Position numbers and translations under genes: made by a program. From assembly GCF_046119375.1 (NCBI RefSeq), contig NW_027362773.1, positions 211,048,001 to 211,112,000 of the forward strand: a DNA stretch of 64,000 nucleotides. The letters run 5' to 3'. The notes beneath the pieces are model-generated. The model was not told the origin of the DNA, searched no databases, and saw nothing but the letters and a program-made list of their open reading frames with translations. Positions 20,032 to 29,000 of the stretch are shown here, piece by piece. Source of the stretch: Phyllobates terribilis. Taxonomy: Eukaryota. Every line of letters starts with the position of its first letter. Within the stretch, counting starts at the first letter, position 1.

Positions 20032-23000
20032 TCAGTTCCTCAGTGCAGCCAGTCTGAAAGAAGAAAGGACAAGAGTCAGAAAGCTGTACCTGGACACTAG
20101 CTCCACAGTCACGAATACCTGCGGACCTATCGAATGTGTCCTTACATGGATTACCCATGCAAAGAGACTTGTGTCTGAAAACTAGTTACATTCCTTCCTC
20201 TGAATGATCGAATGCACGGCTTCTGTGTATTAGCCATCTACTTCCTAAGCCGGGTCATCCAGGTCATCCACTACTGTGCTTGTGCAAAATTGGTTCCTCA
20301 ATCTTACCGGCGTGACAGCTGGTCTTCCGGGGTGCGGGAGGAACTCTCTCCCACGGACGTCGCTTCCTGAGGAAGCTGGTGGAGCTGATCCATGACTTCC
20401 AAATCATTCTCCTTTGCGATCTGTATGATCAAGTTATCCACCTGTTCCTGCGGAGTGGTCAGGGTCATAGCTGATCCCATAGAGTCCTCCATCACCTGTG
20501 GAAGACAAAGCGTTAAATAGAAAGTGAAAATTAAACAAAGGAGGTTCATGTACCCAAAAATAAAGAGCCTTTAAAGGGTTGTCCAGCCTTAAAATAAGTG
20601 AAGGTCCACAACATGGCATCCTGACCGATCTGATACTGAAGACCTATCCTAAGGCCGGACAAACCCTTTAATCTGCATCTGAAAATTCTGCCGAATTCCA
20701 TGTTTCATTTGACCAAGGATCATTGATTTTTCCTGTTTTGCAAATGAATCATTGATTGCTCTGAACAAAAAGATGGCAATTTTAAGGTGCATGTAAGAGG
20801 TACACAAAGAGCAATAACCTAGTAGGAAGTATGGAAGGCTGGTCTCTATAGAACAGTGCCTGCAAACTGCTATACATGACTGCTACTTAGTGGACATAAG
20901 CGGCAGTGCATGATAACAGAGATTGAGATATTGTATACAGAACATAGAGAACAGTGGTCTCCGACTTACATTTTTACCCAGGAAATCTTCAAACAACTCA
21001 CTTATGGGTACCCATCAAAAGATGTTAGAGTCTGATACGTACCGACGTGTGAACATCCAAATTCTGAACCTGCTGCTCAAATTTATCCATAACAGCCGAC
21101 ACCTTCTGCAGGTCCATGGAGCCCAGCGCCTTGTCCAGAGCCTTTGTCACCTGAGCCATGTTCTTCGTCACCTATGTGCAAAAAAAAAAAAAAAAGCAGA
21201 AAACGGAAATAGGTCTTAGTATTTATATAGTAGTGACATCATTAAATCAACATTACATGGGATATATTCATTTACATAAGGATCCATCCTTTAAAAAATT
21301 TTTTAAATATAATATACACTGCTCAAAAAAATAAAGGAAACACTCAAATAACACATCCTAGATCTGAATGAATGAAATATTCTCATTGAATACTTTGTTC
21401 TGTACAAAGTTGAATGTGCTGACAACAAAATCACACAAAAATCATCATTGGAAATCAAATTTATTAACCAATGGAGGCCCGGATTTGGAGTCACCCCCAA
21501 AATTAAAGTGGAAAAACACACTACAGGCTGATCCAACTTTGATGTAATGTCCTTAAAACAAGTCAAAATGAGGCTCAGTATTGTGTGTGGCCTCCACGTG
21601 CCTGTATGACCTCCCTACAACGCCTGGGCATGCTCCTGATGAGGTTGCGGATGGTCTCCTGTGGGATCTCCTCCCAGACCTGGACTTAAGCATCCGCCAA
21701 CTCCTGGACAGTCTGTGGTGCAACGTGACGTTGGTGGATGGAGCGAGACATGATGTCCCAGATGTGCTCAATCGGATTCAGGTCTGGGGAACGGGCGGGC
21801 CAGTCCATAGCTTCAATGCCTTCATCTTGCAGGAACTGCTGACACACTCCAGCCACATGAGGTCTGCCATTGTCCTGCATTAGGAGGAACCCAGGGCCAA
21901 CCGCACCAGCATATGGTCTCACAAGGGGTCTGAGGATCTCATCTCGGTACCTAATGGCAGTCAGGCTACCTCTGGCAAGCACATGGAGGGCTGTGCGGCC
22001 CTCCAAAGAAATGCCAGCCCACACCATTGGGTCATTCCACATCAAATGGAACAGTTTTAAAAATCGTCCCCACTAGACCTTCTCCGATTTTGTTGAAAAT
22101 TTATAAGGATGTACATGTATGTTTGAAAAGAGGTTCTGTAAATTTTTAGGGCCAGATCTCAAATACATTGGGCACTGTTGACCTTTCACTGGAGGTTCCA
22201 CCAAGCCTACGGCTTCAGCTAAGAGGATTTTGCAAACTTTGGCACATAGCCATTAGAGTTCTATACTGGCTATGATGCTGAAATTTGGCATACTAGCTCA
22301 ACTTTTGCTGCTAAACACGATAAAATTATTACCGGCTATGACAAAACAATATTTCGGCCGCAATTTTGTGTCAAAGTAGCTTGTAAAACGCGTCGCATAA
22401 AATTTATGCCAAACTTTGCCCATATATAACTCAAGACCAAAAACCAATAGTAACTGGTGCTTTGCCCTGTACACCAAACATCTACATGACTTTGCATTGC
22501 TGCAATATCACGGTCAAACCATATGTATTTGTGGAAATATTCACACCCACATATGATGAAAAACTTAAAAAAAAAAAACGAATTTTACCTATTTTTAGGT
22601 CAAATTTCTCAAAAAGGGTACCCCTAAAATATATTAATTCTGATATCATTAGAGCACATTTTTCTCTACATGGATCATTGATGTTTTTTTTGGAGTCTCT
22701 CAGTTTAAGAAAAGAAAAATGCCACTGAACATGGTGTTATTTATGCGCGTAATGCATTGATTTTGTGCTTGATTTTCAGATTCTTATCACATGTTACAGA
22801 GTTGTATTGTTGCTAGCAATGTCTATTATAATCAAAAACCTATAAACCTGTTTATGAAAAGTTATTGACTATTGTTACATTTTAATGCATATATTATTTA
22901 TTTTTTAACGATGGAGAATGAAATTGATGAAGAATCGGCCCAGTGCTCTATCGGCCTTGCGAACAATTCGAAGTGCCACCTTAAGACATTCACCCATAGC

Positions 23001-26000: not shown

Positions 26001-29000
26001 GTCATGTAGATGTTTGGTGTACAGGGCAAAGCACCAGTTACTATTGGTTTTTGGTCTTGAGTTATATATGGGCAAAGTTTGGCATAAATTTTATGCGACG
26101 CGTTTTACAAGCTACTTTGACACAAAATTGCGGCCGAAATATTGTTTTGTCATAGCAGGTAATAATTTTATCGTGTTTAGCAGCAAAAGTTGAGCTAGTA
26201 TGCCAAATTTCAGCATCATAGCCAGTATAGAACTCTAATGGCTATGTGCCAAAGTTTGCAAAATCCTCTTAGCTGAAGCTGTAGGCTTGGTGGAACCCCA
26301 GTGAAAGGTCAACAGTGCCCAATGTATTTGAGATCTGGCCCTAAAAATTTACAGACCCTCTTTTCAAACATACATGTACATCCTTATAAATTTTCAGCAA
26401 AATCGGAGGTCGAGTGGGGACCACTGGTCCACTTGACATGGAATGACTCCATTACTGACCCACTGCCAAACCAGTCATGCTGAAGGATGTTGCAAGCAGC
26501 AGATCGCTCTCCACGGCGTCTTCAGACTCTGTCACGTCTGTCACATGTGCTCAGTGTGAACCTGCTTTCATCTGTGAAAAGCACTGGGCGCCAGTGGCGA
26601 CTTTGCCAATCCTGGTGTTGTGTGGCAAATGCCAAACGTTCTGCGCGGTGTTGGGCTGTGAGCACAACCCCCATCTGTGGACGTCGGGCCCTAATACCAC
26701 CCTCATGGAGTCGGTTTCTAACCGTTTGTGCAGACACATGCACATTTGTGGCCTGCTGGAGGTCATTTTGCAGGGCTCTGGCAGTGCTCCTCCTGTTCCT
26801 CCTTGTACAAAGGCGGAGGTAGCGGTCCTGCTGCTTGGTTGTTGCCCTCCTACGGCCCCCTCCATGTCTCCTGGTGTACTGGCCTGTCTCCTGGTAGCGC
26901 CTCCAGCCTCTGGACACTACGCTGACAGACACAGTAAACCTTCTTGCCACAGCTCGCATTGATGTGCCATCCTGGATGAGCTGCACTACCTAAGCAACTT
27001 CTGTGGGTTGTAGAGTCCATCTCGTGCTACCACAAGTGTGAAAGCACAACCAACATTCAAAAGTGACCAAAACATCAGCCAGAAAGCATTGGTACTGAGA
27101 TGTGGTCTGTGGTCCCCACCTGCAGAACCACTCCTTTATTGAGGGTGTCTTGATAATTGCCAATAATTTCCATCTATAGTCTATTCCATTTGCACAACAG
27201 CATGTGAAATTGATTGACAATCAGTGTTGCTTCCTAAGTGGACAGTTTGATTTCACAGACGTTTGATTTACTTGGAGTTATATTCTGTTTGCATTGTGAA
27301 AGTATTTGGGCCCCTTGAACTTTTCTACCTTTTGCCACATTTCTGGCTTCAAACAAAGATATAAAATTCTAATTTTTTTGGGAAGAATCAACAACAAGTG
27401 GGACACAATCATGAGTGGAATGAAATTTATTGGATATTTTAAACTTTTTTAACAAATTAAAAACTGAAAAGTGGGGCGTGCAGTATTATTCAGCCCCTTT
27501 ACTTTCAGTGCAGAAGTTCAGTGAGGATCTCTGAATGATCCAATGTTGTCCTGAATGACTGGTAATGATAAATAGAATCCACCTGTGTGTAATCAAGTCT
27601 CCGTATAAATGCACCTGCTCTGTGATAGTCTCAGGGTTCTGTCTCAAGTGCAGAGAGCATCATGAAGACCAAGGAACACACCAGGCAGGTCCGAGATACT
27701 GTTGTGGCGAAGTTTAAAGCCGGATTTGGATACAAAAAGATTTCCCAAGTTTTAAACATCTCAAGGAGCACTGTGCAAGCGATCATATTGAAATGGAAGG
27801 AGTATCAGACCACTGCAAATCTACAGAGACCCGGCCGTCCCTCTAAACTTTCATCTCAAACAAGGAGAAGACTGATCAGAGATGCAGCCAAAAGGCCCAT
27901 GATCACTCTGGATGAACTGCAGAGATCTACAGTTGATGCGGGAGAGTCTGTCCATAGGACAACAATCAGTCGTACACTGCACAAATCTGACCTTTATGGA
28001 AGAGTGGCAAGAAGAAAACCATTTCTCAAAGATATCCATAAAAAGTCTTGTTTGAAGTTTGCCACAAGCCACCTGGGAGACACACCAAACATGTGGAATA
28101 AGGTGCTCTGGTCAGATGGAACCAAAATCGAACTTTTTGGCCACAATGCAAAACGATATGTTTGGCATAAAAGCAACACAGCTCATCACCCTCAAAACAC
28201 CATCCCCACTGTCAAACATGGTGGTGGCAGCATCATGGTTTGGGCCTGCTTTTCTCCAGCAGGGACAGGGAAGATGGTTAAAATTGATGGGCAGATGGAC
28301 GGAGCCAAATACAGGACCATTCTGAAAGAAAACCTGTTGGAGTCTGCAAAAGACCTGAGACTAGGACGGGGATTTATCTTCCAACAAGACAATGATCCCA
28401 AACATAAAGCAAAATCTACAATGGGATGGCTCAAAAATAAACGTATCCAGGTGTTAGAATGGCCAAGTCAAAGTCCAGACCTGAATCCAATCGAGAATCT
28501 GTGGAAAGAGCTGAAAACTGCTGTTCACAAACGCCCTCCTTCCAACCTCACTGAGCTCGAGCTGTTTTGCAAGGAAGAATGGGCAAGAATTTCAGCCTCT
28601 CGATGTGCAAAACTGATAGAGACATACCCCAAGCGACTTGCAGCTGTAATCACAGCAAAAGGTGGCGCTACAAAGTATTAACTCAAGGGGGCCGAATAAT
28701 ATTGCACGCCCCACTTTTCAGTTTTTAATTTGTTAAAAAAGTTTAAAATATCCAATAAATTTCGTTCCACTTCACGATTGTGTCCCACTTGTTGTTGATT
28801 CTTCCCAAAAAAATTAGAATTTCATATCTTTATGTTTGAAGCCAGAAATGTGGCAAACGATAGAAAAGTTCAAGGGGGCCAAANNNNNNNNNNNNNNNNN
28901 NNNNNNNNNNNNNNNNNNNNNNNNNNNNNNNNNNNNNNNNNNNNNNNNNNNNNNNNNNNNNNNNNNNNNNNNNNNNNNNNNNNNNNNNNNNNNNNNNNNN

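Follow-up and report, generated by a model that had tools for sequence, protein, structure and literature searches.

A structurally complete but probably decaying Sola2-type transposon nested in a Tc1/mariner element of Phyllobates terribilis

The DNA investigated here, referred to as the window, is a stretch of 64,000 nucleotides from Phyllobates terribilis (NCBI RefSeq assembly GCF_046119375.1, contig NW_027362773.1, positions 211,048,001 to 211,112,000 of the forward strand). It contains a transposon of the Sola2 type, 4,421 bp in length (22029-26449), nested inside the transposase gene of an older Tc1/mariner element. It is probably a copy of an autonomous cut-and-paste element, complete in structure but decaying, and this copy is most likely dead. 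An earlier interpretation made from the letters alone (the sequence-only reading) had described it as broken only by three one-base slips. Comparison with the major form of the family did not bear this out. A total of 17 coding differences were found, 13 nonsynonymous and 4 synonymous, which is a roughly neutral ratio, and the nonsynonymous changes included the replacement of the invariant Gln203 by lysine. Because conserved residues were changed, the removal of three bases would not restore the protein of the family. The features of the element and its host are listed in Table 1.

The major form of the family was obtained by aligning Logan contigs with the element, using four runs (X1, X2, X5 and X6) that came from four studies and two organisms. 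In each run, one long contig covered most of the gene, and over their common stretch (from 23787) all four contigs showed the same deviations from the window. The contigs of X5 and X6 showed 18 substitutions against the window over 23156-25726, corresponding to about 0.7% (about 99.3% identity). The extra bases at 23887 and 25041 were absent in all four runs, and the extra base at 24949 was absent only in X6. At the A8 and A5 runs, the slips either belong to this copy alone or arose as errors during its assembly. The break at T10 is not private, the family containing T9 as well as T10 forms. Furthermore, the catalytic piece contains nine changed sites, and at five of these (23947, 23984, 24014, 24487 and 24750) it was the contigs that agreed with the residue conserved in the 120 homologues, the residue of the window being deviant. 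The private variants of the window copy include 23947C, 23984G, 24750G and 25451G.

The transposase gene was distributed over four open stretches, 22869-23966 (first ATG at 22911), 23881-24975, 24899-25063 and 24993-25451, each displaced by +1 from the preceding one, and the overlaps between the frames contained the A8, T10 and A5 runs. Reading through the three runs gave 2,541 nt, and the subtraction of the three extra bases left 846 codons with no stop, in agreement with the open reading frame of about 846 amino acids in the sequence-only reading. When 120 homologous proteins were aligned by tblastn, the frame changes were placed at 23873-23908, 24950-24957 and 25039-25047, the query coordinates continuing without a gap, and 18 of the homologues covered all three breaks as single proteins. 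The frame-break pattern is not due to chance, because the homologues were colinear over all four frames. The nearest relative, a soil-metagenome contig (L001, 1-2524), shared 75% DNA identity with the element along the 3' half, the long inverted end included. It encoded the last three transposase pieces in one frame, with one base fewer at the T run and at the A5 run (A4), and its T run was interrupted by a G. The open stretches, the tblastn colinearity and this relative together confirmed the proposed frame order 0>1>2>0 at A8, T10 and A5. In addition, a 59%-identical relative from another organism (L002) carried a frameshift of its own at the homologous A run, which codes for lysine (4980-5010; A7, one base short). 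This break was opposite in direction to that at A8 of the window, and therefore the A run is a recurrent mutational hotspot and not a conserved site.

The boundaries of the element were confirmed by empty Tc1 paralogues and by the flank of a second copy in the public contigs. The exact 4-bp target-site duplication (TSD) claimed earlier, CATT, was read in the sequence on both sides. Contigs of uninterrupted Tc1 paralogues from the four runs joined 22023 to 26449, so that exactly 4,425 bases (4,421 + 4) were skipped. These empty sites, which derive from thousands of other Tc1 copies and are not assignable to this locus, read ...CCATT followed by ACTGACCC, with joints and loose contig ends at 22028. 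Moreover, a contig of another copy of the element (X1) exited into unrelated flank just past 26449. No second Sola2 copy was found within the 64-kb window.

The search of the protein database with piece B returned 1,298 relatives in animals, with a best E value of 2.5e-146. No near-identical protein was present in that database, the best match reaching 60% across the full length or 78% across 65%. The Pfam search of the four pieces and 53 homologues gave nothing for the catalytic core and only weak helix-turn-helix matches, such as that of residues 236-278 of piece A to HTH_23, which was under the curated cut-off (E = 2.5e-4). The Cys-rich N-terminus (22944-23297, plus strand) gave no Pfam match at E<=1. 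The AlphaFold model of piece B (predicted local distance difference test score, pLDDT, of 88) showed the canonical strand-helix order of RNase H. Residues 169-356 superposed on the core of the avian sarcoma virus (ASV) integrase with a Z score of 10.8 and a root-mean-square deviation (rmsd) of about 3 Å, and Foldseek weakly agreed. As modeled, the core of the transposase is an RNase H/integrase fold with three aspartates. The candidate catalytic residues D189, D274 and D315 of piece B, with a spacing of 85/41, were invariant in 53 sequences and stood at canonical catalytic positions in the model, which upheld the three aspartates picked out from the sequence alone.

The C-terminal part of about 135 residues (25047-25451, plus strand) was modeled as a small beta-barrel with a pLDDT of 88. 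It was similar to the Tudor domains of PHF1, PHF19 and MTF2, with an rmsd of 1.6-1.8 Å over about 62 residues at weak E values (0.07-0.1). The barrel could be a chromatin-reading or targeting module. It is this domain that the T10 break would remove.

The Sola2 group was reportedly defined in 2009 by Bao, Jurka, Kapitonov and Jurka, who are also said to have published Sola2_DFa-2 and Sola2_PPa-1. The transposases of these two elements served as reference proteins (PMC3627910, supplement 3), and about 230 residues were compared visually, with no computed score. In the first catalytic block, VLMDFKEN (DFa-2) and ILCDFKEN (PPa-1) corresponded to ILMDFAEN in the window protein. The second block read WSDGAKHFKS in DFa-2 and WCDNARHFKS in PPa-1, the pattern SDG..(Q/H).K being common to the window protein, and the third read YHGKSDVD and YHGKSECD, respectively, against SHGKSPCD. 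Gln203, Gln211, a VIY block and an SD..H block were also common to the window protein and the published Sola2 proteins. The catalytic spacing of Sola2_DFa-2, counted by eye, was 87/43, similar to the 85/41 of the window protein. The ends may be similar as well: Sola2_DFa-2 ends in GAGC...GCTC, and the ends of the element, GGGTCATTCC and GAGTCATTCC, have GAG/GGG at their start. Furthermore, the window element resembled Sola2 in its 4-bp TSD, which is a feature of this group (PMC3627910), in its inverted ends, in a single-exon transposase of the order of 850-890 residues and in having no Pfam model. The RNase H-like domains of Sola elements match no Pfam family (PMC5751038).

Several characters were different from those of the Dictyostelid Sola2 elements. 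Their inverted ends are 12-22 bp long, compared with about 716 bp in the window element, their target is AT-only instead of CATT, and the window element has no Fanzor passenger gene. Unlike them, the window element resides in a vertebrate and its copy is frameshifted. Among more distant systems, the integrase cores of ASV, Rous sarcoma virus and human immunodeficiency virus superposed on residues 169-356 of piece B with Z scores of about 10-10.8 and an rmsd of about 3 Å over 130-141 residues, and the core of IS21 IstA superposed at a Z score of 9.6. The window aspartates matched the canonical positions of their acidic residues. However, the identity was 5-13%, the third residue of these proteins is Glu instead of Asp, and their flanking domains are different. 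This likeness reflects a common fold and not family membership.

The catalytic blocks, the 4-bp TSD and the RNase H fold with three aspartates supported the Sola2 assignment of the sequence-only reading. On this basis the element is placed in Sola2, its position relative to Sola1 and Sola3 being provisional. It is extremely unlikely that it belongs to another DDE/D superfamily and merely resembles Sola2. Such a placement could draw on the absence of any curated model, from Pfam or elsewhere, for scoring the element, and on the neighbors in the ESM Atlas, which were DUF7869 clusters and unnamed eukaryotic clusters. It would have to explain why the three catalytic blocks, further invariant residues and the spacing match two published Sola2 proteins, and why the 4-bp TSD is accompanied by GAG/GGG termini like the published DFa-2 ends. 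Membership in DUF7869 itself was considered and rejected, as hmmscan returned neither DUF7869 nor any other transposase family.

As for the origin of the three breaks, ordinary slippage mutation is the simpler reading, because it is accompanied by a parallel load of apparently real substitutions, and it is quite likely to be correct. The alternative of homopolymer-length errors in the assembly, with an open frame in the physical copy, is unlikely. All three breaks are +1 and lie within homopolymers, and independent contigs were shorter at two runs in all four data sets and at all three runs in X6, as such errors would predict. However, those contigs represent other copies or the majority path and are also 18 substitutions away from the window. 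The substitutions of the window look like neutral decay (13 nonsynonymous to 4 synonymous) and hit conserved sites, and two private indels per 18 substitutions is an ordinary ratio for decaying DNA, which counts against assembly error. Moreover, a run of five bases is a rare place for an error of this kind. Even with an open frame, the copy would still encode the change of Gln203 to Lys and the other replacements.

The sequence-only reading had also considered a slippage-based brake on expression. In this scheme, T10 would be a functional slippage site, transcriptional or ribosomal, which limits the full-length transposase and yields mostly a truncated protein without the barrel. T10 was the major form in three of the four runs and in two organisms, and ten consecutive U can in principle cause slippage. 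The ratio of contig depth at the ends to that in the interior was 1.97 in X6 and about 0.4 in X1, X2 and X5. With two arms in each copy, DNA should give a ratio near 2. X6 looks DNA-like and the other three runs look more RNA-like, the kinds of run being guessed, and the low ratio suggests that the interior is transcribed. The RNA-like runs carried T10 and the DNA-like run T9, which gives a lead only: the run kinds are guessed, contigs cannot display mixtures, and the difference may reflect different copies or individuals. On the other side, this stretch lies within a single frame in the relatives, and in the nearest of them the run contains a G. The same out-of-frame arrangement was not conserved in the 18 spanning homologues, L001 or L002, so no programmed frameshift was found among them. 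The other two breaks were not conserved either, the extra bases of A8 and A5 being absent from the major form and the A-run break of L002 being in the opposite direction. The brake was not supported by these results, and a functional slippage site at T10 is very unlikely. Ordinary slippage mutation is retained as the preferred origin of the breaks.

The major form was near-identical in both organisms, with differences at one or two sites, and was recovered in contigs that were unbranched over 2 to 3 kb. The X6 contigs spanned the whole gene without any of the three extra bases, and no listed substitution created a stop. The proposal of a young family found support in this major form, which was present in four runs and two organisms and was about 99.3% identical to the window copy. 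Judged from the sequences, the family is young and possibly still active, and it may hold intact copies elsewhere. It is also conceivable, if rather doubtful, that the family is still mobile, with at least one naturally intact autonomous copy and with the T9/T10 run as a toggling on/off switch or slippage site.

Several points weigh against the interpretation of the window element as a decaying copy of a young Sola2-type family that may hold intact members. No read or contig with the private variants of this copy was found, rare variants being lost from contigs, so that assembly error at the A8 and A5 runs keeps a small probability. For a family with many copies, contigs represent a majority path and not a physical copy, so that the open frame of X6 is no proof of an intact copy. 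As T10 was the major form in three of the four runs, most copies or transcripts may carry that break. The protein comparison behind the Sola2 assignment was visual and unscored, and no experimental demonstration of Sola transposition was found in the literature searched. The literature on Sola features and on poison-frog transposons added nothing on Sola2.

The following history would be consistent with the above. A Sola2 element would have inserted into the Tc1/mariner transposase gene and duplicated CATT. Its transposase of about 846 residues would have comprised a Cys-rich/helix-turn-helix N-terminus, an RNase H-like core, a short linker and a C-terminal beta-barrel. If it acted like other DDE/D transposases, this protein would bind to the ends of the element, cut the element out and insert it with a stagger of 4 bp. 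After insertion, the copy may have drifted to about 0.7% from the major form. It presumably gained single-base expansions at the A7 and A4 runs and about 13 amino-acid changes, several of them at conserved sites.

The terminal inverted repeats (TIRs) of the element (22029-22744 and 25750-26449) were about 98-99% alike over the inner 650 bp or so, as stated by the sequence-only reading for the inner TIRs. The outer part of about 65 bp (22029-22095 against 26385-26449) was diverged, with several substitutions and with indels of 9 bp and 3 bp. Usually the reverse is seen, with the strongest conservation at the terminal bases to which the transposase binds. The host Tc1/mariner element (21581-22028 and 26450-26990, minus strand) was extremely abundant in all four runs, where its contig depth summed to between thousands and tens of thousands and variant contigs were numerous. 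Runs of N, which are assembly gaps or masked stretches, were present at 28884-29023 and 35420-35564.

Table 1. Features of the Sola2-type element and of its Tc1/mariner host, in window positions.
Feature	Position	Strand	Evidence
Host Tc1/mariner, C-terminal half of transposase (DDE_3), cut by the insertion	21686-22028	-	Pfam DDE_3, E = 2.9e-11; contig depth in thousands
Left TSD copy, CATT	22025-22028		Sequence; empty paralogous Tc1 sites
Left TIR, about 716 bp, starts GGGTCATTCC	22029-22744	+	Repeat comparison; X5 contig record 22 starts at 22029
Transposase piece A (frame 0): Cys-rich N-terminus, weak helix-turn-helix	22911-23893	+	Pfam HTH_23, E = 2.5e-4; colinear homologues
A8 run, first +1 break; major form A7 in 4/4 runs	23887-23894	+	One base left out at 23887 in X1, X2, X5 and X6
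Transposase piece B (frame +1): zinc-binding Cys/His motifs and RNase H-like catalytic core	23894-24957	+	Homologues; AlphaFold model
Candidate catalytic Asp 1, D189 in LMDFAEN, end of strand 1	24445-24447	+	Invariant in 53 sequences; block in Sola2_DFa-2 and PPa-1
Private A (major form C), Gln203 to Lys	24487	+	Gln in 119/119 homologues, also in Dictyostelid Sola2 proteins
Candidate catalytic Asp 2, D274, end of strand 4	24700-24702	+	Invariant in 53 sequences; model; published Sola2 block
Candidate catalytic Asp 3, D315 in HGKSPCDG, start of helix after strand 5	24823-24825	+	Invariant in 53 sequences; model; published block
T10 run, second +1 break; major form T10 in X1, X2 and X5, T9 in X6	24949-24958	+	Contigs; L001 one base fewer
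Transposase piece C (frame +2), 29-codon linker	24958-25044	+	Open stretches; homologue alignment
A5 run, third +1 break; major form A4 in 4/4 runs	25041-25045	+	Contigs; L001 A4
Transposase piece D (frame 0 again), stop TAG, C-terminal beta-barrel domain	25045-25454	+	Alignment; model, pLDDT 88
Right TIR, reverse complement starts GAGTCATTCC	25750-26449	-	Repeat comparison; X1 contig leaves after 26449
Right TSD copy, CATT	26450-26453		Sequence; contigs
Host Tc1/mariner, N-terminal half of transposase	26450-26986	-	Pfam HTH_Tnp_Tc3_2, E = 1.5e-22

The window copy shows the ordinary decay of an insertion, and it is the major form of the family, or its other genomic copies, that offers the useful lead. 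Further work should start from those copies, because mending three bases leaves the changes at conserved residues in the window copy. Sola transposases have no Pfam model, and a natural active element may reasonably be sought in a young family of vertebrate transposons whose copies are near-identical. The results also give a first look at the predicted architecture of the protein, with a zinc/helix-turn-helix front, a three-aspartate core and a weakly Tudor-like C-terminal barrel. If the family were mobile with a toggling T run, it would provide the first vertebrate Sola2 transposase that is directly testable for transposition, and the modeled C-terminal barrel, with its weak Tudor-like matches, might steer integration.

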